DNA of 64,000 bases. It comes from Bugula neritina (Eukaryota > Animalia > Bryozoa). Each line of letters opens with the position of its first letter. Positions within the stretch are counted from its first letter, which is position 1. The notes below the pieces were generated by a model. It ran no database searches, had not been told where the DNA came from, and saw only the letters and a list, made by a program, of their open reading frames with translations. This document shows positions 8,276 to 31,009 of the stretch, one piece after another. The position numbers and the translations under genes are program-made. The stretch lies in assembly GCA_964035545.1 (NCBI GenBank), contig OZ037770.1, forward strand, positions 5,528,729-5,592,728, in the 5' to 3' direction.

Positions 8276-10876
8276 TTAGGGTTTTTCCTCTTCATCCAAC
8301 CCATCAAAGCTAGGAAACAGGTAAAGTCTTTTACGGGGAGGAAGAGTCTTCCAGATTACAACCAAATTTCTGCTGCTCTCTGAATCTTCATCTGCATATA
8401 GTTTCTTCACTAATTTAGTCTGTACCTGTAGAGTAAGTAATGACTAGTAAGATTGTGTACCAATTTACTACCAGATGAGATAAATATTTACAACTCTTAG
8501 CTGCTGGAATATATATACCATCTTATTTGTATCAAATCTAAGCAGTAAAATCTTGAGAGTTGTCTGCTACAGTTAAAAATATAAGGTATATCATTGCAGT
8601 AAAACTAAGACAGTCTGTTGAAAATATCAATCAAAAATATGAATAATAAACAGCTGAAATAATAGAAATATAAAACCAGATTATTCAGCAAAATTATCAT
8701 TCTAGACTTACCTGCTTGAAAATGGTGTAGAGATCACGGTGACAGGCATGTTTGTAGATTGAAGCTACTAGAGCTCTAATCATGGGAGATCCATATTCAG
8801 GATGTCTCTTTGATGCTACAATAAAATTAAATGCAGCCAGAATTATGGTGTAATGAAAGCAAGCTCAGTATTTTAAAAAGTGTTTCTTTGATATACTTTT
8901 TAAAGACAAGTTTACAAGATTGGATTAAGAAGAGGCAATTTCCTAAATAACTGCAACTGCGCACATGTAAAACTAGCCAACAACTATTTAGTATACGTAC
9001 TGCAGACGTTACTCTTTAAAACAAGAAGATTATCAACATCTAGTCTGGTCCACCGCTCTTCTATTCTAGGTGCTGGTGGTAAGACAGGTCTGATGGGTCT
9101 TATTACACTGGGTGTTTCAGGATATACAATATCATCATCAGATTCAGAATGTGTAGATGAGACAGCTTCAGTTTCTTTTTCTTGAGCTGCTGCAATACCA
9201 GATCTGTCTGGATTCACATCAATGTTTGCTGCAACAAAAATTTTTTTAAGCTTGCATCTTGAGTAAAAAAGGAATTCAATCAATACAGAGAGAGCTTTTC
9301 AAAGATCTTTGTTCTACTTCCACAACTCGACTAAAAATAAAAATTTTCTATAAAACGCTGTAATTACCTCCACTGCAAGCTTCTAGGATGACAACTGTAG
9401 GTTTACGCTTTAGACTTAGAGGAGCGAGTAAATCGTACAAGTCTGTAAGATTGACCTTCTCAAGGTCAGTTCCGTAGATGCAGTTATCTTCTTCACCGTG
9501 ACTCATGACAACCAGCATGTGACAGCCCAAGCCGTTGTTTCTTTCATTTTTTATCTCGGACTTCACAGCAGACAGCATTTCCTACATTATTTTTATAAAA
9601 TGTTATTATATTGTAATGGATTTCAGATTATGTTATTATCGAAAGGATAACTCTTTGTGGCTTACTCTCTATACGCTTGGCATAATGGCTATAAGTACTG
9701 GAGATCAATTATCATAATAGCTGACAATTGGAATGCGTACAATCTGCTGGACAATTATTGCTAGCTACTAATGCACGCAGTTAAACAAGGCAAGACTAGT
9801 TAAATGGAATCAACAACTGTAGGAGGCGTAGATGGTTTGCACTGACAGTTAGCTGCTTAGTAGCAGATGCTAGTGTTATGCTTATGGTGATGGAGTTAAT
9901 TAGTAGCGACAGAGACGACTTGGCGTAGACGGTTACCCGACAATATCTTACAGTCGACAGTGGCACCACTAACGCTAGCCAATCAGGACAGTAACACTAA
10001 TTGATAGCAGGTGGAGCTAGCTACTCGTAGTTGCAGTGCGCTGAGTAGCTAGCCGGCAGAGCAGCTTGGGACTTCATTTAGAACAGTTGTGTATTAAAGC
10101 TCACTAATTATGTAATCGTTTTCTATTCATGCTAGCAGTAAATAACCTTCTTGTATTTGTGTAAATAATAAAGTATCTTATCGTAAACAACCTGTCGCAG
10201 TGGCTTTGTTTAAGTAGACCCACACATAATAATAGTGAACTGGCAAAATTCACTACAATATCTCTATAAATTGCTGCATTTTCTATATAATCCTGGCCCA
10301 TCAGCCATTTATAGCATAACTGCAACTTGACAATATTAGGAGGTTGCTAAATTTTGTTTCAATAGTAATAGGTATTTCAGTTGAAAAGCTAATACGTCAG
10401 CCAAGTTGAGCTGTGTAAGTAATAATAATCATACAGGTTAATGAGAGCTATCACTTAAATCAGTATGACTATTGATAACTATAAATATTGACTCACAAGC
10501 AAGTATGCCAAGATGTGCACCCATTTTAGCAAACCTTAAGTAATATTAGAACAGTGTGTAAGTTGAGCAAATACTGAAGAAAAAGCTTGACCATAAAAGT
10601 TTGAATACAGTTTCACACAAAAAGAATTTTAACTTCTTCAAAGAAATAGCATGCTACCATGTTTATAGTTCACTACTATTGCTGTATCATTCTAAAATAT
10701 TATACCTCTGCCTTTAGGTCTGTGTGTGTCTCAACATCAAACTTGAGAGATTTCAACATGGCAGACATATTCTCAACATCAGCATCTGAACCTTTCCTGC
10801 ATAAGTCTGGTCTTTTAGCAAAATGTTTGTTGTTTATGATCAGAGCTCTTCCTCTGTTTCTGGTCATACTGAACAC
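8276..10876 (-). CDS. Caspase catalytic domain (p20, linker, p10) exons of the ROCO-caspase gene
   Basis: Five exons: 10876-10706, 9581-9368, 9228-9001, 8815-8712, 8425-8276. Catalytic His in SHG (9495-9503) and Cys in EACSG (9369-9383). Both S1 arginine equivalents are present (CRKGS, SKRH). Confidence 0.9.
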
Positions 10877-13800
10877 CTGGAGGCAAGAATATTTAGAATG
10901 TCATGTACAGTGGTGACATGAATGTTTAATGAATAAATATTGGGAGCCAATTTGGCCGAGGCTCGCAATTATCAAATTATATTACGATCAAGTTTACTTT
11001 GAAAAGGAAGCAAATATTCTACATTCAGGTCTTTTTTATTACTAAGTTGAAAAATAAAGGAATAATTACAAGCGTAGGGCCACACGAAATCTTTTACACG
11101 CGGGTGACATGCGAGAAATCCCGTTTTGCTCAAAAATTGGACGTTGTGAGCAGGATTTTAATGTGTCTAGCATGCTGAGTGAAAAATGCGAGAAGCTCGT
11201 GCGTGTTTGATCTAATTGGCTTATTATTATTTAGCGTGCACACTTTTTTATTTCAATTTGAGTTTTAGCTTTTAGCAAACTGGAGTAAAACAGTTTTATA
11301 TAATTCGCATTTCCGCTTTGATAATATCTGTCGAACTTTCACCGCATTGGTAAAAACTGACAGCTGCGTTCAGAAATCAGACAGTTGTGACGTCACAGAG
11401 GTCAACGCTTAGCCTCGAAAACGCATTCAAAATGGCGTTTCGACGGTAGTGTGGCAGCCCCATAAATTCACTTTGCCGATGACTTAGTTTTATAAACAAA
11501 CGTGTAAAGGCAAGCAGTAAGGTTTAACGCTAACATTGTTAGCTAATAAATTTTTGCACTCACAACACATGCACTGTGCGTGGCATGTCTATACGGGCAC
11601 GGGTAAGGGTTTTCCCGCACGTCACGCGCATATAAAAGGCTTCGTATGGCCCTACGCTAACACTATAGTGTATTGATTGTCCAAACCAAAATGTCTAAAG
11701 ACGGCCGATAAACAATGTAATAACCTTGACAGTATTTGAAAAGAGTTGTTTAATCCTTGGGTTGCTGGTTGGCTTTAAGTTGAGTTTTATCAACTTCATA
11801 TCCTTGTCCTTCTCTTCACAAGTCTGTAAAACTTCATCGTCATCAGAGAGATCACTTAGATCATCAACCTCTGCAGTCACAAGATTTTATTGTCAATATT
11901 TGACAAACACAAGAAATTTGTTCATTGCATACAAATAAACATTAGATTTTGCCGGAAATAGCTTTGCTAAACTCGTCAAAGAAATTTACATGATCAGAAT
12001 TTCTATACTGTTTATACAGCTGTTTGAAATTAGTCAACAGCTTTTGCAATTTTTTTTTCTCTCAAACTTAACTCTATCCAGAAAAACAAAGCTAAGAATT
12101 AACTATACTGTAAAAGTTTACCAGTGAAGTCCTTCTGCTCTATTCTTCGTAGTTTGAGCTCTGCCAACAGTGTCTCCAACATACTAATTTTTGCTTTTGA
12201 CAACGCCTCACCTGAATAAAACTGATTAGATGAATTACCTTGACTATTACTTTGAATATAACTATAACTAGATATGTTTTACTACCAAATCTCAATATTG
12301 ACACAACTAAAGAATATGACGGATATAAAAAAAAGTTTTTAATTGAATAGTTCAAACTGATGATATATTCGGAAACACGATTAGGCAATGTTTGGTGTTA
12401 AATCTAGTTATGATGAATTCAAATTAGGAGTTCGTAACTTAAACAAACAACTCAAACTGACCTTGTGTACTTTCAACGTTTGAAAATGCATTGATGTTCA
12501 ATAAAAAAAGAAAGTTTCAGTAAAAATATTCATGACTTAACTTACATGGGTAGATTAAAGCACTGGGCACTTCCTCGTTGTTACACAATGTTGTTGAAGT
12601 TCCACTACATTTCTTTACATCTGGTGATGGGTTGCTTAAGGAACGAAGACACCAATTAGGACGAATGATTTTTTCAGGGCAAGAAACCCCAAGCATGATG
12701 CAGTGAGCACAGAAGCAGGCAGTGACTGGTCGACTAGCAGTCCAAGTTTCCATCACATGTCTGAGGATGTTGTTGTTGGTTGAAATAAGTTTCTCCCACA
12801 TCCTCGAAATGTGAGCAGCATCAGAAGACACATAGAGTAAGACTCTTCTTGATTTGCAGTCATGTATCAGCTGTGTGTATATTTGATCTTGGTAAACATT
12901 AACCCCATTTTTCTTTACCCTTCTCACAGCAAACTCCTCTGGAAACAGCTCTAGCAAACCCACAGTCATTTGGTGGTAGACATGCTGTGGTAATGCCAGA
13001 CCATTAAACTGTGTCTCAGCAACAAGTAACAGGTCTTTCGATGATGTGTAGGAAGTACAATATAGCTCCTTGGCAAACTGTGGAACAATGTAGTATGATT
13101 CTTTAGCATCATTTTCCAAAGGACCATACAGCAAACGGAATGTTCTGAGCAATGAAACAGCAATTTCAACATCACCAGAACTCTTGAAGGAAGTTTCGTC
13201 CGCAATCAAATATGTTAGAAGAGGTTGCATCATCATGCCACTAGTCTTGAAGCAATTGACAGATTTTTCAAAGTCTTGCTTTTCAATCCTGACTCCTTCT
13301 ATGGAATGATATGATTTGAACTGATCAACCCGACTCTGCCAAATTTTTGGGTCATGGTGATACAAAACACACAACAGTTTGGTTACTTCAGAAATCTTGT
13401 GAAATATGTATGGCCTGAGCGCATCAATATTCTTGTACCACAATACTTTACCGCAGTCATGCATGTATGTGAGAATAGTATCTAGCTGGCTTGGCTTCAG
13501 TTCAAAGCCGTCTTTTCTTAACACAAGCAGAATAAACCAAAAGGAGCAAAATGCTCCAGGTAAAGAGAAAACTTTTTCATTCACTATTTCCCATATCAAA
13601 GGCAAAGGCTTAACAAAATGCTGACTGCTCTCTAGAAGGGAGCTCTTTATCAGGTCGTACTCAGCATAGTCGTCTTCTTTTCCGATCTGATATATATCTT
13701 CACTGGCAAAAACCTTTCCATTCGATGAATTGAAATGCTGAATTTTCACAAATTCCCCATCTGAGCTTTTCTCTTCATCAAGAATTTCTTTGCACAGTTC

Positions 13801-16800
13801 ATCAGATACTCTAAGAAAATCGTCTTTTATTTGTTGACACTTCTCACTTTGAAACTTATCTTTGTGTGTGAAAACAAGTTTAGGTGGGCCAAGAGATGGA
13901 TGAGCGAGATAGAGGTGAGACATGAAGTCAAAGGCCAACTTTCTCACAGCCTCTCTGTTTGTAGATGCTTTCGAAATCTGATCATACTGCTCCATGTTGA
14001 CTACAATGACTGGTACACAATTCTGTCTCAGTGTCAAATGGTATGTGATATGGTAGACCTCCTGGCCTCCCATATCTATGAGACGAAGAGTTGTACCATC
14101 CACCTCCACCTCTTCCATATTAAACACTTTCGTGGTCTCATCATGTTCTGCATTCGAACTTCTCTTAGTCAGAACTCTCTTCCTGTCAGTGCTCTGTAAT
14201 GTTTTGATTAGACTGGTTTTACCTGCCATGGTGTTCCCTAATACCGCTATTGTAGCAAATGGCAAGTTTCTACCAGTGCCCTTGTCCAAATCTGTGTAGT
14301 ATTGTTGCACAGCATCTAGTCCTCTCTGACAAACTTCTAGTGGGGGAGATGTAAGAGCATCGCATTTGTTTATATTCAGTGTATGGAGATGTGTTAGCTG
14401 TAATATCTCAGGGTTCAAGGATGTCATGAATATGTTGAAGGAAAGATTCAGTGTTTGCAGATTACTCAACATGCACACTGAAGATGGCAAACTGATGAAG
14501 TTATTCATTGATATGTCTAGGGTCTGTAGCTCCTGCAGACTCTGCATCCTAATAATATATTATATTTTTATTACCAGCATAAACTAGAGGTAGTTGGTAT
14601 ACAATAATTAGGCTAGGTAGTATTGTATGATAGTGACTATAGTAAGCTCATATGAAACACTTTTAACTATCTAGCAATCAGCCTTATGGTAGCTACAGAA
14701 AACAAGTAGATATAAGCCACAATCATCATATTATATATACTGTATGTAAATTGGTGTTGTGTGTTGAGAGTAGAGACAAGGAGAATAAGTATTGGAAGAC
14801 TGGAAAAGGATATTAGAGAATGCCGACTTAAAAGTCAGCAGGTATAAAACTGTGTATGTATCTCCAGAAAAAGCAGTGATGACATAGGATTGATGGAATA
14901 TGATAGATCTGAACATTCCACTTTGATTCCAAAACCCACATTCAAATACCTGGAGAATATAATTCACCAGGAAGCAGAATGTAGAGGTACAGGTGCGCAT
15001 TGGTAACACCTAGGATAAATGGAGAGAACTGACTGAGGTAATATGTGACAATAAAGGAGAAATGAAGAGAGCTGACATAAAGGCAATAGGTGAGGGTACT
15101 GTCATAATAATTGTGTGATATATTTATGTATCATTATACACTGGCTAATTGACCTTTGGATTAGTTGACAAATATAACTGACCACAGAATCTATTGTTAA
15201 CCTAAGCCAGTCAGTAGGAGTGTACACATCAGATAGTCACCAAGTCTCTTAGCCCACAACTCTTTAGTCATTAGTAATGAAAGGGAAAGTCTGACATATC
15301 TCAACATAACTGTATGTTACCATGTTTTGTACCACATATAATATGAATGGTATAATTGATTTTGTCATTTTATCTTATATACAGTGTTGATGTAATAATA
15401 TGACTACATTATATAATTCATTTATATATGTCTTTTTTGTACCTGCAGGTTTAAATAATATAATATACATGCTTATAGTAACACTATAATAGAGGGTAAT
15501 GAATTTGTAAGTAAATATTATTATAGTCATTACATAATACATAAAAACAATATTATTACTCTGTGCGCCTGCATTCTGTTACTGCAATTTTTTATATTAT
15601 AGTTTATCATAGATCATGTGACCCTGAGTATTAAAATTTATGTTTTATTCAACAGGGTACTTGTTTCATGTCATCAATAAAGATAATCAGCGTTGTCAAA
15701 CCTTTGCATTGACTTGTAGTGAATACTAGCACAATGTAGTCTACTTTATTATAATAATATATACTGTATATATATGCTGCTTGTGCATTCAAACAATGAA
15801 TAGAGTTTAGGCAGCAATGCAAATTTCAAGTGCAGAGCTAATAAATCAAGAGAGCTATTGAGAATTCAACAGTAAATAAATACTAATCAACTATAAATGG
15901 CTGCTTTATTATAAATTATGAAGGTTTTCATATATATTTTATGACAAAATCTAAAACTATGTTATTTTCAAAATGTGAGAGACTATAATACGCATGTAAC
16001 TTCAAAAAAACTCCAGATTATATACCTTTATATTTTAACCTAGTAATATATAATGGGGTACTAATTGATATTATTTAGCATGCACATAAATATGTGAATT
16101 ACTGAATTTTTAAACAATACAAAATCTGTGAAACACAAACCTCTCAGGTAGAGTAGATAATTTACAGCTCCCCATATCCAACTCTTTAAGTGATGTGAGT
16201 GATGACACAACTTCTGGTACTGTGTTGAGAGGATTCCCTCCTATGACTAGTTTCTCTAACTGAGTCAGCTGACACAGACTGTAATATAAAGTGTGTGATA
16301 TATGCAATCCACTGTATCAGGATAATATATATACTGTATACATTTTTTGTGTATTCAAACCAGGTAAAAAATTCAAGTAATGCACTTACTGTTACAAGAC
16401 ACTACAAGAGGCTGTTCCATTATTAAATACAAAACTTTTTACTATAGAATGCTATATAATACCATAGCTTACAGCTGTGTTACTTCAAGGATATAACAAA
16501 CTATTACATGCCTTTGAAAAATTCACTTTATATTTTTAACCACAGCAACATATAATATAATATACTTCAATATTACTTTTTAAGCATATAAATATATGAA
16601 TGTCTCAGTTTTTGAAACAAGGAAAGCATACCATGACACTAGTACACTTACAAAACTACTAAATAGAATTTAGAATTCTAATCATATTTCAACAATAAAG
16701 CATTAAAATTTCACATACACTATAAAAGCCACTCAAAAGGAAGGAACTGAATACAAAACAATCAGCCTAAAGAAGTTTGTTGTAACCAAGTTATTTTGAA

Positions 16801-19800
16801 GATGTGAATTATTGAGTGCTTGAAACAATACAAAATCTGTGACACACAAACCTCTCAGGTAGAGTAGATAATTTACAGTTCCACATATACAACTCTTTAA
16901 GTGATGTGAGTGATGACACAACTTCTGGTACTGTGTTGAGAGGATTCCCTACTATGTGTAGTTTCTCTAACTGGGTCAGCTGACATAGACTGTAATATAA
17001 AGTGTGTGATACATCTAGTCTACTGCATCATAATTGCATAATTGCATCATATATTGTACACATTGCTTGTGTATTCAACCAAATAATTTATAAAAACCAA
17101 TTTGGTTGGGCAACAGATAGTTGAAGCAATCAAGGCATAAAGCTATGAAGCATACAATAGCTAGTTTTACTATTAAAAGACTGTTTCAATAATTACCATA
17201 ATTTTTTAAAGCATAATAATATGCTGTGACATGCCATCAAATTATGTCATTTACAGATTATGACTTATAACTACTATAGATAACCTCAAAAATATGGTTT
17301 TTAGCAAGGCAACATATGATAGGATACATCAACACTGTAGTGTTGAGTTTACCCAGTGTCTCCATGGTGTAATGATTAGTGTGCCTGCTTGCAAGGTATT
17401 AGGTATTAGGTATTAGGTTCAAATCCCAGTTGAAGCAAAGTTTGATAAGCACCATTCAGTGAGCGTATAAATATGTAAATTATTGAGTGTTTGAAACAAT
17501 ACAAAATCTGTGAAACACAAACCTCTCAGGTAGAGTAGATAATCTACATATCCACATATTCAACCTTTTAAGGGATGCGAGAGATGACACAACTTTTGGT
17601 ACTGTGTTGAGAGGATTCTCTCCTATGACTAGTTTCTCTAACTGAGTCAGCTGACATAGACTGTAATATAAAGTGTATGATATATCTAGTCTACTGTATC
17701 ATGATAATATAATATACTGTACACATTGCTTGTGTATTCAACCAAGTACTATATAGAAATAAATTTGGTTGAGCAACAGATAGTCAAAGCAATCAAGGCA
17801 CAAAGCTATGAAGCATACAACAGCCAGTTTTACTAGTAAATGACTGTTTCAATAATTACAAAGGATTTTGAACATATAATAATATGCTGTGGCACACCAT
17901 CAAATTACATCATTTACAGATTATGACCAAGTAATATAGATAACTTCAACAAATTCAGTCTTTTTAGCAAGGCAATACATGTTAGGAAACATCAACACTA
18001 TAGTACTGAGTTTACCCAGTGTCCCATGGTGTAACGATTAGTGTGCCTGCTTGCAAGCTGGAGGTCTTGGGTTCAAATCCAAGGTGGAATAAAAGTTTGA
18101 TAAACACCATTCGGTGAGCATATAAATATGTAAATTATTGAATGTTTGAAACAATACAAAAACTGTGACACACAAACCTCTCAGGTAGAGTAGATAATTC
18201 ACAGCTCCACATAATCAACTCTTTAAGTGATGTGAGAGATGACACAACTTTTGGTACTGTGTTGAGATGATTATCTCCTATGTCTAGTTTCTCTAACTGA
18301 GTCAGCTTACATAGACTGTAATATAAAGTGTGTGATATATCTAGTCTACTGTATCACAATAATATAATATACTGTATACATTTCTTGTGTATTCAACCAA
18401 GTACTATATAGAAATAAATTTGGTTGAGCAACAGATAGTCAAAGCAATCAAGGCACAAAGCTATGAAGCATACAACAGCCAGTTTTACTAGTAAATGACT
18501 GTTTCAATAATTACAAAGGATTTTGAACATATAATAATATGCTGTGGCACACCATCAAATTACATAATTTACAGATTATGACCAAGTAATATGAATAACC
18601 TCAAAATGCAGTCTTTTTAGCATGACAATATATGTTAGGAAACATCGACACTATAGTACTGAGTTTACCCAGTGTCCCATGGTGTAACGATTAGTGTGCC
18701 TGCTTGCAAGCTGGAGGTCTTGGGTTCAAATCCAAGGTGGAATAAAAGTTTGATAAACACCATTCGGTGAGCATATAAATATGTAAATTATTGAATGTTT
18801 GAAACAATACAAAAACTGTGACACACAAACCTCTCAGGTAGAGTAGATAATTTACAGTCCCACATATTCAACTCTTTAAGTGATGTGAGTGATGACACAA
18901 TATCTGGTACTGTGTTGAGAGGATTATTTTCTATGTTTAGTTTCTCTAACTGAGTCAGCTGACACAGACTGTAATATAAAGTGTGTGATATATCTAGTCT
19001 ACTGTATCACAATAATATAATATACTGTATACATTTCTTGTGTATTCAAACCAAGTAAAATATGCAAGAAACATACTTATTGTTGCATAGAACAGCAAAG
19101 AGTTTTTGCTATATTATGTTGTAGGTGAGGAGAGGAAGCTTCATTATGCAAGGTTAGCTGTTAGCTTATAGTACATAAGGCCCCATTCTACACGCTAGGT
19201 AAGTTAATTTGATGACTAAATTGTAATGTAATATATTTGTAGTTTACGACATAAAGTAGCCTTTTCTATACTACTATAAACTGTGAATTACTTCAGTTTT
19301 CAGCTACATAAAACATGATTTATTTAATGCTATCAAATAGCAGTATACAGGCAGCTTTAAACCCTCTAGTTTCTACAACCAGCTTACTTGGTATAGGTAC
19401 AATGTTGCGCATTACACTATGTTAATGTGTATGCATTTTATTATTCAATAAATAACACAAATGAACTCATTTAACATTTACACAGCTATTTTAATAGACA
19501 CTCACTTGTCCAGACTTGCTCTGTCAGTCAGGTAAGAAACACATAGACGCAGGGCTTTACCAGCAATTTCTCCAATGTTACTTGGAATTGTTCCCTCCAG
19601 TTTGAGATCTATGATATCATAATTCCCAACTTCACGTTTTACCTCAGCAGTAGTATATGACTTGGTATTAGCATACCATTCATCTGACCAGCTCACAGGA
19701 GGCTGTCCAGAATGTCTGAACCAGATTTCCATATTCTCTGTAACATTATACAGTGACAGTGTGATTATTACACAGTGCTAGCAGGTGGTGTCTATCATTC

Positions 19801-20539
19801 TGACACTTGTCATCTACAGTTTGAATATATTTATTATATGGTGGATGTCAATATTCATATCTATAACTAAATTACACATATTTTAATGAGTAGCTTTAGA
19901 CTCTTCATAATAAGTCATTTTGTGTATAATTTCTAGAGCAGTGTTGATTACTTTGCGATAAGACAACTTTAACCAAGCTGCTTGCATTATTTTACATATT
20001 ATATAACTTTTCAAAGCATCAGGTTAATTGTTAGCATAAACAAGTATAGGAGCTAGTGAAAATGTTTTTATATAATGTTTTTTTATATATAATTGGTTGT
20101 TTTATAATGTTTATAAATATAATCTAATATATTGAATTGGCATAACACCTACATTTACTTATCTGTTACCTTTCATACTTGAAGGTTTACATACATGTAC
20201 TAAAGAGTTGGACATACAAACATTGCCTCTACGTAAAGACAACAATCAATAGTGATGGATACATTCAAACGTCTGCATGTTTTTCACATTAGCATTTGAT
20301 GTGAAAGTTAAAATTTAATAATCTTACATTATTTTTACATCTAAAACTACAGTTTGATATATTACTCATATTTGAGCAATATAATTATATAATATGATAA
20401 TATATAATATAAATATAATAATCAACATTATACAAAGTTTTATAATAATTTTCATGCTATTATCAGTGTTGAAGTGTTTTTATTGTCCAGAAATAAATGA
20501 ATAAAGTAGTTGTTAAATTCACTCACCACCAGTTGCCAT
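8276..20539 (-). CDS. LRR-Roc-COR (ROCO, MFHAS1-like) protein with a C-terminal caspase (peptidase C14A) domain, about 1346 aa, 15 coding exons
   Basis: Exons 5'->3' on -: 20539-20527 (MATG), 19737-19506, five LRR exons (18968-18831, 18315-18178, 17660-17523, 16989-16852, 16278-16141), 14548-12546 (LRR cap, Roc, COR), 12211-12122, 11870-11725, 10876-10706, 9581-9368, 9228-9001, 8815-8712, 8425-8276 (TAA). All junctions are GT-AG with matching phases. Total is 4041 nt, 1347 codons, with no internal stop. Roc motifs: GNTMAGKTS, DMGGQ, THKD. Caspase motifs: RGRALIINN...RKGSDADVENM, VMSHG, ILEACSG, SKRHPEYGSPMIRAL, KRLYLFP. Confidence 0.88.
11072..11657. mobile_element. MITE, PIF/Harbinger-like, in an intron of the ROCO-caspase gene
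   Basis: Imperfect TIRs of about 50 bp (GCGTAGGGCCACACGAAATCTTTTACACGCG... / ...CGCGCATATAAAAGGCTTCGTATGGCCCTACGC). Flanks are CAA/TAA, a near-match 3-bp TSD. The TIR start resembles the 25695/39502 family. Confidence 0.8.
12546..14548 (-). CDS. 2003-bp exon encoding the terminal LRRs/LRR cap, Roc GTPase and COR domain
   Basis: Corresponds to ORF 12517-14547. It contains LQTLDISMNN/LQTLNLSFN repeats, the SPPLEVCQRGLDAVQQYY cap typical of ROCO proteins, P-loop GNTMAGKTS (about 14212-14238), DMGGQ, THKD and COR-type LTYMHDCGKVLWY and YYIVPQF. Acceptor TAG at 14549-14551, donor GTAAGT at 12540-12545. Confidence 0.92.
14751..15055 (+). mobile_element. Degenerate RTE-clade LINE reverse-transcriptase fragment (intronic)
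   Basis: With frameshifts and a stop, it reads LVLCVESRDK...LEDWKRILENADLKVSRYKTVYV...FKYLENII...EVQVRIGNT*DKWRELTEVICDNK. This is the characteristic RTE/BovB-like RT C-terminal pattern (LExWRxxLExxGLKVSRxKTEY; FKYLG; RIxxxWxKWRxxxGVLCDK). Confidence 0.8.
17357..17440 (+). mobile_element. tRNA-derived SINE head (degenerate, internal GGTATTA triplication) in an LRR cassette intron
   Basis: A-box-like TGGTGTAATGA and B-box GGTTCAAATCC. Paralogous to the copies at 18020 and 18673. Confidence 0.6.
18020..18090 (+). mobile_element. tRNA(Ala-TGC)-like SINE head in an LRR cassette intron
   Basis: A box TGGTGTAACGA, anticodon-like loop CTTGCAAG, B box GGTTCAAATCC. The acceptor stem does not pair, so this is not a functional tRNA. 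Confidence 0.65.
18673..18743 (+). mobile_element. tRNA(Ala-TGC)-like SINE head in an LRR cassette intron
   Basis: Identical to 18020-18090, carried along by the cassette duplication. Confidence 0.65.
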
Positions 20540-21379
20540 GGTTACCAAATGGTAGATTGCCTTTCTTGGTAATAAGTTTTAGCTAAAATGTAGCAGTTTC
20601 ACCTAAAACAGATATTAAATACAAAGTAAAATAATATGATTACTCATCATTTTCATTATATTCTTAGAGTACATCAATATTTCTAAATATATTGAATATC
20701 TGGCTTAACAATACACCAGATCATCAAATGTTTCACAACTTCCTGAAATAGGTGTAGGCAGCTATTAAATATAAAGTAGTAGAATATAATTACTAGCTAT
20801 TTTCACCCTTTGTAAAGTACGCGGATAATTTCAAACAAGAGTCCAGATCTGACTAAACAATACACCAGGTGAACAAATTTGAATCAGAATATTTGACAAC
20901 TCTCTCAAATACTTATACATTTTATAACATATAGATATGTACATATAATCATTACTAAAAATAGTATTCCTTTGGTTCAAATGCTTGAAAGTTGAATAAG
21001 TTGTGACTTAAGCAGACTAAGGACTTCAATTTTTTATTTGACTTGACACAGTTTGGAGTATGAGTAGAACTCATCTCAAAAAACTTTTTGAAATATTTAT
21101 TTTCACACAGGCCCGATAGTTATAATAGTGTAACAGCAAAATCCAAAACTGCATTCAGCAATTCCTCAGAAGGGGAAGTGTTACAAAATATTCTACTTCT
21201 GGACAAAGCTGTATCAAATAATATCACCCAGCAATTTACATACTCTTATATAAATAAACCAAGTACTATAACATGACTATAAACACAGAGCTATGTTTTC
21301 TAAAAAGATGTAGGGAATTAGTAAAACATGGGAATCTCATGACTAACTCTACAAGCTGACTGACCTCTACTAGCTGCAG

Positions 21380-23177
21380 TGTAGAATATTAGTGCAAGGT
21401 AGAATATTAGTGTAAGGTAGAATATTAGTGTAAGGTAGAATATTAGTGTAAGGTAGAGTATTAGTGTAAGGTAGAGTATTAGTGTAAGGTAGATATTTAG
21501 TGTAAGGTATACTTTTAGTGCAAGGTAGAATATTAGTGTAAGGTAGAATATTAGTGTAAGGTAGAGTATTAGTGTAAGGTAGACTATTAGTGTAAGGTAG
21601 AGTATTAGTGCAAGGTAGAATATTCGTGCAAAGTAGAATATTAGTGTAAGGTAGATAATTGGTATAAGGTAGAATATTCGTGCAAGGTAGAATATTAGTG
21701 TAAGGTAGAGTATTAGTGCAAGGTAGAATATTCGTGCAAGGTGGAATATTAGTGTAAGGTAGAATATTAGTGCAAGGTAGACTATTAGTGCAAGGTAGAG
21801 TATTAGTGCAAGGTAGAATATTAGTGTAAGGTAGAATATTAGTGTAAGGTAGAATATTAGTGTAAGGTAGAGTATTAGTGTAAGGTAGAGTATTAGTGTA
21901 AGGTAGATATTTAGTGTAAGGTATACTTTTAGTGCAAGGTAGAATATTAGTGTAAGGTAGAATATTAGTGTAAGGTAGAGTATTAGTGTAAGGTAGACTA
22001 TTAGTGTAAGGTAGAGTATTAGTGCAAGGTAGAATATTCGTGCAAAGTAGAATATTAGTGTAAGGTAGATAATTGGTATAAGGTAGAATATTCGTGCAAA
22101 GTAGAATATTAGTGTAAGGTAGAGTATTAGTGCAAGGTAGAATATTCGTGCAAGGTGGAATATTAGTGTAAGGTAGAATATTAGTGCAAGGTAGACTATT
22201 AGTGCAAGGTAGAGTATTAGTGCAAGGTAGAATATTCGTGCAAAGTAGAATATTAGTGTAAGGTAGATAATTGGTATAAGGTAGAATATTCGTGCAAGGT
22301 AGAATATTAGTGTAAGGTAGAATATTAGTGTAAGGTAGAATATTACTGTAAGGTATGATATTAGTGTAAGGTAGAATATTAGTGCAAGGTAGACTATTAG
22401 TGTAAGGTAGATTGTTAGTGTAAGGTAGAATATTAGTGTAAGGTAGACTATTACTGTAAGGTAGAGTATTAGTGTAAGGTAGAATATTAGTGTAAGGTAG
22501 ACTACTACTGTAAGGTAGAATATTAATGTAAAGTAGAATATTAGTGTAAAGTAGAATATTAGTGTAAGGTAGAATATTAGTATAAGGTAGACTTTTAGTG
22601 CAAGGTAGAATATTAGTGCAAGGTAGAGTATTAGTGTAAGGTAGAATATTAGTGTAAAGTAGACTATTAGTGTAAGGTAGAATATTAGTGTAAGGTAGAC
22701 TATTAGTGTAAGGTAGAGTATTAGTGTAAGGTAGAATATTAGTGTAAGGTAGACTACTACTGTAAGGTAGAATATTAGTGTAAAGTAGAATATTGGTGTA
22801 AGGTAGAATATTAGTGTAAGGTAGGATATTAGTGCAAGGTAGAATATTAGTGTAAGGTAGAATATTAGTGTAAGGTAGATTATTAGTGTAAGGTAGACTA
22901 TTAGTGTAAGGTAGAATATTAGTGCAAGATAGACTATTAGTGTAAGGTAGAGTATTAGTGTAAGGTAGATTATTAGTGTAAGGTAGACTACTACTGTAAG
23001 GTAGAATATTAGTGTAAAGTAGAATATTAGTGTAAGGTAGAATATTAGTGTAAGGTAGAATATTAGTGTAAGGTAGACTACTAGTGTAAGGTAGATTATT
23101 AGTGTAAAGTAGAATATTAGTGTAAGGTAGAATATTAGTGTAAGGTAGGATATTAGTGCAAGGTAGAATATTAGTGC
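21380..23177. repeat. 18-bp minisatellite (TAGAATATTAGTGTAAGG)n, about 100 copies, with an internal higher-order duplication of about 414 bp
   Basis: Clear 18-nt periodicity. The variant unit GTATACTTTTAGTGCAAG recurs at 21507 and 21921. This array explains the spurious ORF 21318-23204. Confidence 0.95.
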
Positions 23178-27140: not shown

Positions 27141-27666
27141 AGTGTAAGGTAGATTATTAGTGTAAGGTAGAATATTAGTGTAAGGTAGAATATTAGTGTA
27201 AGGTAGAATATTAGTGTAAGGTAGAATATTAGTGTAAGGTAGAATATTAGTGTAAGGTAGAATATTAGTGCAAGGTAGAGTATTAGTGTAAGGTAGAGTA
27301 TTAGTGCAAGGTAGACTATTAGTGTAAGGTAGAATATTGGTGTAAGGTAGACTATTAGTGTAAGGTAGACTATTGGTGTAAGGTAGAATATTAGTGTGAG
27401 GTAGAGTATTAGTGTAAGGTAGAGTATTAGTGCAAGGTAGACTATTAGTGTAAGGTAGAATATTGGTGTAAGGTAGACTATTAGTGTAAGGTAGACTATT
27501 GGTGTAAGGTAGAATATTAGTGTAAGGTAGAATATTAGTGTAAGGTAGAATATTAGTGTAAGGTAGAATATTAGTGTAAGGTAGAATATTAGTGTAAGGT
27601 AGACTATTAGTGTAAGGTAGACTATTGGTGTAAGGTAGAATATTAGTGTAAGGTAGACTATTAGTG
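27141..27666. repeat. Second array of the 18-bp minisatellite (TAGAATATTAGTGTAAGG)n
   Basis: Same unit as 21380-23177 and followed by the same ~390-bp flank. Confidence 0.95.

Positions 27667-28737: not shown

Positions 28738-31009
<2,272 letters not shown>

Follow-up and report, generated by a model that had tools for sequence, protein, structure and literature searches.

How did five closely similar exons come to stand in tandem within one gene of the bryozoan Bugula neritina, and what does the variation among them serve? We analyzed a stretch of 64,000 nucleotides (nt) of contig OZ037770.1 (assembly GCA_964035545.1, positions 5,528,729 to 5,592,728 of the forward strand), called the window below, in which all coordinates without a chromosome label are counted. 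The exons lie on the minus strand, and each encodes a pair of leucine-rich repeats (LRRs) with a conserved framework and a few highly variable residues. An original prediction, made from the letters of the window, had read them as modular cassettes with a diversified binding face. Our analysis makes it likely that they are germline, tandem-duplicated cassettes of two LRRs that form most of the sensor arm of an LRR-Roc-COR-caspase protein, that their number changes by unequal crossover, and that the concave face of the LRRs is under diversifying selection.

Cassette exons and their hypervariable codons

The five cassettes are, in the order of transcription:
18968-18831, minus strand: LRR cassette exon 1, 138 nt, bounded by ttacag and gt, open frame, RNA-contig coverage, joint 18968/19506
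18315-18178, minus strand: LRR cassette exon 2, 138 nt, same boundaries, RNA-contig coverage
17660-17523, minus strand: LRR cassette exon 3, 138 nt, same boundaries, RNA-contig coverage
16989-16852, minus strand: LRR cassette exon 4, 138 nt, open frame
16278-16141, minus strand: LRR cassette exon 5, 138 nt, RNA-contig coverage, Pfam LRR_4 match

All five are directly preceded by ttacag and directly followed by gtttgtgt. Each encodes 46 residues, corresponding to two LRRs of 23, and the fifth matches LRR_4 (PF12799) with 29.7 bits at a cut-off of 27. Since 1 nt is left over at the 5' end of the cassette frame and 2 nt at its 3' end, every flanking intron is in phase 2. The exon before the array ends with 2 nt and the Roc exon after it begins with 1 nt, so that any cassette can be added or removed in frame. 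The five symmetric, phase-2/2 exons of 138 bp that had been proposed as units of in-frame gain and loss therefore fit in their lengths, boundaries and neighboring phases; only the start of the third had to be moved by one base, from 17661 to 17660.

Contigs assembled from RNA runs cover the cassette exons and leave the introns nearly bare, and they contain joints exactly at 18968/19506 and 17660/18831. The exon-only coverage together with the exact joints identifies the cassettes as real spliced exons. These contigs are short assemblies from four studies of other individuals, which confirm exons and joints but cannot assign isoforms.

To compare cassettes within the family, we examined about 290 kb of paralogous sequence containing 123 cassettes, about a third of the candidates in the genome, taken from a single 4-Mb cluster. 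Seven codons (11, 13, 14, 34, 36, 37 and 39) are hypervariable among the 116 distinct cassette sequences. When 105 distinct cassette peptides are aligned, 38 of the 45 columns show a majority residue and exactly seven lack one. The variable residues occupy positions 5, 7 and 8 of LxxLxLxxN in the first repeat and positions 5, 7, 8 and 10 of LxxLxLxxCxL in the second, with W, Y, R, D, N and G frequent among them. For one cassette, an AlphaFold model based on the family alignment (mean predicted local distance difference test score 71) places β-strands at residues 9-13 and 32-36, so that the variable residues alternate with core leucines within the strands or directly follow them. In LRR solenoids, such strand positions form the concave, ligand-binding face. 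The seven positions are thus predicted to be the outward-facing residues of two β-strands and the residues just after them.

We assessed selection by counting tests. Family-wide, the seven codons have a nonsynonymous diversity (pN) of 0.30-0.59, compared with a synonymous diversity (pS) of 0.114 over the whole exon, and pN/pS in the framework is mostly 0.05-0.9. Intron diversity in the family (0.2-0.5 per site) exceeds synonymous diversity (0.11), which means that synonymous sites are no safe long-term neutral standard. We therefore rely on a bracketed design, in which pairs of cassettes were chosen on the outer intron only (-300 to -111 and +71 to +260) and the divergence of the inner intron and the exon was measured. 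In 25 independent pairs, the outer flank differed by 4.4%, the inner intron by 5.6% (248/4435), framework third positions by 4.7% and the framework overall by 3.4%; the hypervariable codons differed at 127 of 525 bases (24.2%, P about 1e-37 against the inner flank). On the time scale of close pairs, synonymous and intron rates agree and the seven codons change 4-5 times faster, while the framework is under purifying selection. Codon by codon, 9-15 of the 25 pairs differ in the amino acid, against a neutral expectation of 3.1; the excess survives Bonferroni correction at four codons and has P = 0.002 at the other three. In codons 11 and 34, each of the four bases is frequent at the first position and the synonymous third position is nearly fixed, which argues against a simple local mutation hotspot. 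Accelerated amino-acid change at the x positions of LxxLxLxxN/C is thus strongly supported against both the intron and the synonymous benchmarks, in line with the diversifying selection originally predicted.

Two other designs were rejected. Choosing sister pairs on both near flanks gave a 4.1-4.6-fold excess, which is biased because the same bases serve to pick the pairs and to measure them. Choosing on one flank and taking the other as the benchmark gave 1.3-1.5-fold, and is flawed because in a tandem array the two introns beside an exon differ in their nearest relatives.

The same comparisons qualify the statement that introns are more conserved than exons. It holds for the youngest units of the window: cassettes 1 and 2 differ at 14 of 138 nt, of which 2 are synonymous and 12 nonsynonymous, exactly as previously counted by hand, against 19 of 612 in both flanks together (Fisher P = 9e-4). 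The seven codons account for this excess, as they contain half of the exon changes. Family-wide the statement fails, as whole exons and introns of the bracketed pairs differ by 6.6% and 5.6% (P = 0.08).

The gene, its family and the growth of the arrays

The five cassettes belong to a single gene on the minus strand, reaching from 20539 to about 8276, which is predicted to combine LRR, Roc, a COR-like region and caspase in one chain. Searches and folds were run exon by exon. Besides the cassettes, we assign the following exons:
20527-20539, minus strand: gene exon 1, start codon ATG at 20539-20537, donor GTGAGT, RNA-contig tails
19506-19737, minus strand: gene exon 2, N-terminal 77 residues, ending in phase 2 and spliced to cassette 1, RNA joint and coverage
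12517-14548, minus strand: large exon with the last three LRRs, the Roc GTPase with its P-loop and a COR-like region, acceptor 14550-14549
10706-10877, minus strand: caspase exon, start of the large subunit, PF00656 (E = 2e-11)
9366-9580, minus strand: caspase exon with the catalytic His (SHG) and Cys (ACSGG) motifs, PF00656 (E = 1.1e-6)
8276-9229, minus strand: three further putative exons, linker and part of the caspase small subunit, stop near 8276, splice motifs read by eye

The first exon is indicated by RNA-contig tails that do not align beyond 19738 and map to 20528-20552. The 77 residues of the second gave no match in a Pfam search, and paralogs carry an N-terminal exon 71-88% identical to it. 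The acceptor of the large exon is in the right phase for the cassette array; on the 3' side it ends at a putative donor near 12546 or, alternatively, with the open reading frame (ORF) at 12517. Residues 100-193 of this exon match Roc (PF08477) with 31.4 bits at a cut-off of 27, including the P-loop, and the Roc part matches the Roco structures 3dpu, 6hlu and 4wnr, with solved proteins of Chlorobium tepidum and Methanosarcina barkeri and also LRRK1 among its matches. The COR-A match (PF16095) reaches 16.3 bits, below the cut-off of 35.3; several homologues with 37-39% identity carry PF16095 in precomputed annotation. PF00656 matches both caspase exons and the second carries the catalytic His and Cys motifs, as expected for a caspase fold; the gene is predicted to encode the enzyme. 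At 11100-11700, within the intron that leads from the linker exon to the first caspase exon, lies a segment richer in GC than its surroundings, maybe a transposon remnant.

The gene is a member of a large family, for which our counts are lower bounds from genome-wide candidate matches. The Roc-COR exon has at least 168 candidate copies; the 66 that were scored are 59-94% identical to it, mostly uninterrupted, and clustered on C6, C1, C5 and elsewhere. In most family members, a caspase exon lies 1-4 kb downstream of the Roc-COR exon. The original prediction had proposed a genome-wide search with one cassette, and this returned at least 352 candidates, with arrays in many paralogs; nearly all of the 40 scored copies map to C6, at 2.5-6.3 Mb. 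Roc-COR exons (59-67% identical) and caspase exons (45-85% identical) form additional clusters at C1:32.5-35.1 Mb and C5:14.6-17.3 Mb and on C4, C8 and C9. Clusters of caspase exons at C7:7.58-7.71 Mb and C9:9.32-9.41 Mb have no matching Roc-COR exon among the matches listed and may represent a separate expanded caspase family.

The cassettes of this family are well preserved and their number varies widely. Among the 123 examined, 119 have an open frame, a length of 138 nt and AG..GT boundaries; the remaining four comprise one with a GC donor, two with length changes and one that has decayed. Arrays sampled at both ends all lie between an N-terminal exon and a Roc exon. Complete paralogs contain 2, 3, 3, 4, 5 and 5 cassettes, and partly sampled arrays at least 7, 11, 14 and 15, the lengths for plus-strand paralogs being lower bounds. 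A paralog whose Roc-COR exon is 94% identical carries only 2 cassettes. One four-cassette block occurs in triplicate at C6:5035558-5042988, its exons and flanks nearly the same in each copy. The range from 2 to at least 15 cassettes and the fresh triplication support the gain and loss of cassettes by unequal crossover, in agreement with the earlier proposal. As the youngest copies are identical at the variable codons, divergence follows duplication and does not accompany it. In one copy of the triplicated block, an inserted base lengthens a cassette to 139 nt, which would disrupt the frame.

The introns between the five cassettes record the same process. They are:
18830-18316, 18177-17661 and 17522-16990, minus strand: three homologous introns, each with a dispersed repeat resembling a short interspersed element (SINE)
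16279-16851, minus strand: fourth intron, of which only the first 50 and the last 90 nt resemble the other introns

The first two introns are 96.9% identical (14 mismatches and 2 gaps over 517 columns, where about 15 differences in 515 nt had been counted by hand). The third is only 83-84% identical to them but homologous along its whole length. The full-length homology and the common SINE-like repeat indicate that cassettes 1-3 arose by repeated tandem duplication of an exon-plus-intron unit. Cassettes 4 and 5 have counterparts in the paralogs at C6:6.25 Mb and 5.48 Mb, that of cassette 4 being at C6:6253803.

The intronic repeat itself lies at 17985-18125, 18640-18780 and 17340-17480. Its core resembles the reverse complement of the 3' half of a tRNA and has at least 410 candidate copies, on all chromosomes. 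ARAGORN found no tRNA and Rfam no match in this tRNA-like repeat, which probably represents a SINE-like element that has yet to be described and is overlapped by RNA contigs originating elsewhere in the genome.

We propose that unequal crossover between conserved units of an exon and its intron ends would let the arrays grow and shrink, and that new cassette copies would then be pushed apart by diversifying selection on the concave, ligand-binding face. Part of the change may come as short patches of gene conversion.

Selection and gene conversion

Several points weigh against this interpretation. The low family-wide synonymous diversity points to homogenization of the exons or to constraint on synonymous sites, so that family-wide pN/pS overstates omega. 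The size of the excess depends on the design, the one-flank choice giving only 1.3-1.5-fold, a drop that we attribute to the register shift caused by tandem duplication. The seven codons were picked from the data and then tested, to which the per-codon Bonferroni correction is only a partial answer. The cassette sample covers about a third of the candidates, in one 4-Mb cluster. The changes between young copies are clustered, a pattern more in keeping with patch-wise conversion or multi-base events than with single substitutions. An immune or allorecognition role of the family, finally, is something we infer from its architecture and mode of evolution only.

The clustering leads to the alternative that the diversity comes mainly from templated short-tract conversion or crossover reshuffling LRR halves, in which case selection would only keep the variety and the excess rate would reflect imported sequence. 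The youngest pairs that have diverged show their differences concentrated in a single LRR half (overdispersion P = 0.009). One pair carries six differences in a stretch of 33 nt, its flanks having diverged by 0.9%; in another, 10 exon differences go with a flank divergence of 0.7%. Upstream and downstream flanks of a cassette often differ in their nearest relative, and family-wide the synonymous sites of the exons are more homogeneous than the introns. However, flank discordance is predicted by tandem duplication alone, and a search for identical donor patches among 113 cassettes (about a third of the family) found none for four of the five patches and one candidate donor for the other. Gene conversion had also been suggested originally; the grouping of changes by LRR half is a weak hint of it, while of the donors that it calls for a single candidate turned up. 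Moreover, without selection, conversion cannot build variety at exactly the exposed positions. We regard conversion as the main source of diversity as less likely, and hold to diversifying selection, perhaps acting in part on converted patches, as the explanation that we favor.

Known systems and possible function

If the favored reading is correct, the LRR arm would recognize a ligand that varies and stems from a pathogen or a neighboring colony; binding would flip the Roc-COR GTPase switch, which would then activate the built-in caspase. The protein would be a one-chain analogue of an NLR-plus-caspase inflammasome. Animal NLR and inflammasome receptors and plant NLRs likewise combine a hypervariable, solvent-exposed xxLxLxx LRR sensor with a nucleotide-driven switch and a cell-death output, and form large, clustered, fast-evolving families. 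In contrast to them, the bryozoan switch is a Roc-COR GTPase and not a NACHT or NB-ARC ATPase, and the caspase resides in the same chain instead of being recruited via CARD or PYD adaptors.

It is rather unlikely, in our view, that the family serves neither immunity nor allorecognition but another fast-evolving role, such as controlling how zooids degenerate and regenerate, managing symbionts or taking part in intragenomic conflict. The polypides of bryozoans degenerate in cycles, a process that requires caspases, and B. neritina has a vertically transmitted bacterial symbiont, both of which would suit such roles. However, NLRs and plant R genes show the same combination of a large clustered family, a concave LRR face that is hypervariable and an effector of cell death, and symbiont management would itself be recognition.

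The closest precedent is found in the ROCO genes of brown algae. There, each LRR is encoded by a 72-bp phase-2 exon, exon number is variable, positive selection acts on four concave positions and splice variants occur (PMC3341825; PMC11378527); brown algae are stated to have the most ROCO genes known, 9-47 (PMC3341825; PMC11378527). The genes of Ectocarpus and Saccharina resemble the bryozoan family in their N-terminal LRR array before Roc-COR, in tandem phase-2 LRR exons of variable number, in a handful of concave-face positions under positive selection, and in being an expanded family of proposed immune receptors. The bryozoan exons differ in having 138 nt with two LRRs, as opposed to one LRR per 72 nt. 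The bryozoan family also belongs to an animal host, carries a complete C-terminal caspase and is apparently larger, with at least 168 candidate Roc-COR exons against 9-47 genes, and alternative splicing is documented in the algae. The resemblance is presumably convergent rather than inherited.

Of the named database proteins, those annotated as "MFHAS1-like" in the bryozoan Watersipora subatra come closest (39% identity); closer, unnamed matches exist in metagenome collections. MFHAS1-type genes have been placed in deuterostomes only, and Trichoplax has 17 ROCO genes (PMC4104024). Vertebrate MFHAS1 (MASL1) shares LRR, Roc and COR in the same order, but it is a single-copy gene without a caspase, whereas the bryozoan family is large and has a C-terminal caspase. 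The bryozoan gene does not fit the MFHAS1 pattern of a single LRR-Roc-COR protein without a further enzymatic domain. The relative in W. subatra has two-LRR exons of 141 nt, which makes the design older than the split of these two cheilostome lineages; no caspase is annotated in the protein that we examined. Its gene (OY755167.1, 18133-67848) combines these 141-nt exons with introns of 5-14 kb and a single 2-kb Roc-COR exon, and a cassette-like exon at 20043-20177 is missing from the annotated protein. A full-text literature search found no paper on a ROCO expansion in bryozoans, which is not proof of absence, and no described innate-immune receptor repertoire for the phylum Bryozoa.

The variable lymphocyte receptors (VLRs) of lampreys and hagfish also use LRR modules as units of diversity and vary on the concave β-sheet. 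Their assembly is somatic and draws on unspliced donor cassettes that flank an incomplete gene, whereas the bryozoan cassettes are normal germline exons. A VLR-type arrangement of an incomplete gene with donors lacking splice sites was rejected for the bryozoan family, as 119 of the 123 cassettes are open with AG..GT boundaries and the arrays sampled at both ends lie inside genes. Nothing points to somatic assembly.

If the favored reading is true, a family of roughly a hundred genes would have independently invented the sensor-switch-executioner logic of NLR inflammasomes, in striking convergence with the exon-shuffled ROCO genes of brown algae. It would provide concrete candidate genes for colony allorecognition, symbiont control or pathogen defense in Bugula, and its arrays offer a tractable system for exon modularity, unequal crossover and diversifying selection in recognition repertoires. 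We consider it doubtful that these roughly hundred genes are, in addition, spliced combinatorially or variable between colonies in cassette number and thereby give each individual its own sensor-executioner repertoire for pathogens or allorecognition. Such a system would be the animal counterpart of the ROCO genes of brown algae and would add a third way of diversifying LRR-based repertoires to those of NLRs and VLRs.

More specifically, diversity might also be made within the individual, by combinatorial skipping of in-frame cassettes or by VLR-like somatic rearrangement. The uniform phase 2 would keep every skip in frame, and RNA contigs contain the joints 17660/18831, which would skip cassette 2, and 17660/19506, which would skip cassettes 1-2. 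Each of these joints is anchored, however, on 18-27 nt in which cassettes and paralogs are identical or one base apart, and the contigs are short assemblies from other individuals. Because the anchors are short and shared among cassettes, the joints cannot be read as exon skipping. The cassettes are, moreover, ordinary exons in intact genes rather than unspliceable donors beside an incomplete one. Diversification within the individual is thus improbable, and germline duplication with subsequent selection remains our preferred explanation.

That the variable positions are unconstrained surface residues drifting neutrally in cassettes that act as structural spacers without a recognition role is highly improbable: exposed LRR positions do tolerate most residues, but the seven codons exceed the neutral benchmarks 4-5-fold in independent bracketed pairs as well as the per-codon expectation, and the synonymous third positions of codons 11 and 34 are nearly fixed. 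An assembly artefact of the repeat is hardly credible, since tandem repeats of about 650 bp are hard to assemble but the five units differ at 8-18 exon positions and their introns by 3-16% or more, RNA contigs from the four studies match the exons, and dozens of paralogous arrays have the same design.

The sequence next to the gene is itself repetitive. Just upstream of its 5' end are two blocks of one 18-bp satellite (21381-23176 and 27141-27666, about 100 and 29 copies, 88-93% matches), which are the source of long spurious ORFs. A perfect (AC)n microsatellite of about 1071 units (28865-31007, 2.1 kb, 100% matches), either real or an assembly oddity, accounts for the extreme GC and AT skew at 28-32 kb.

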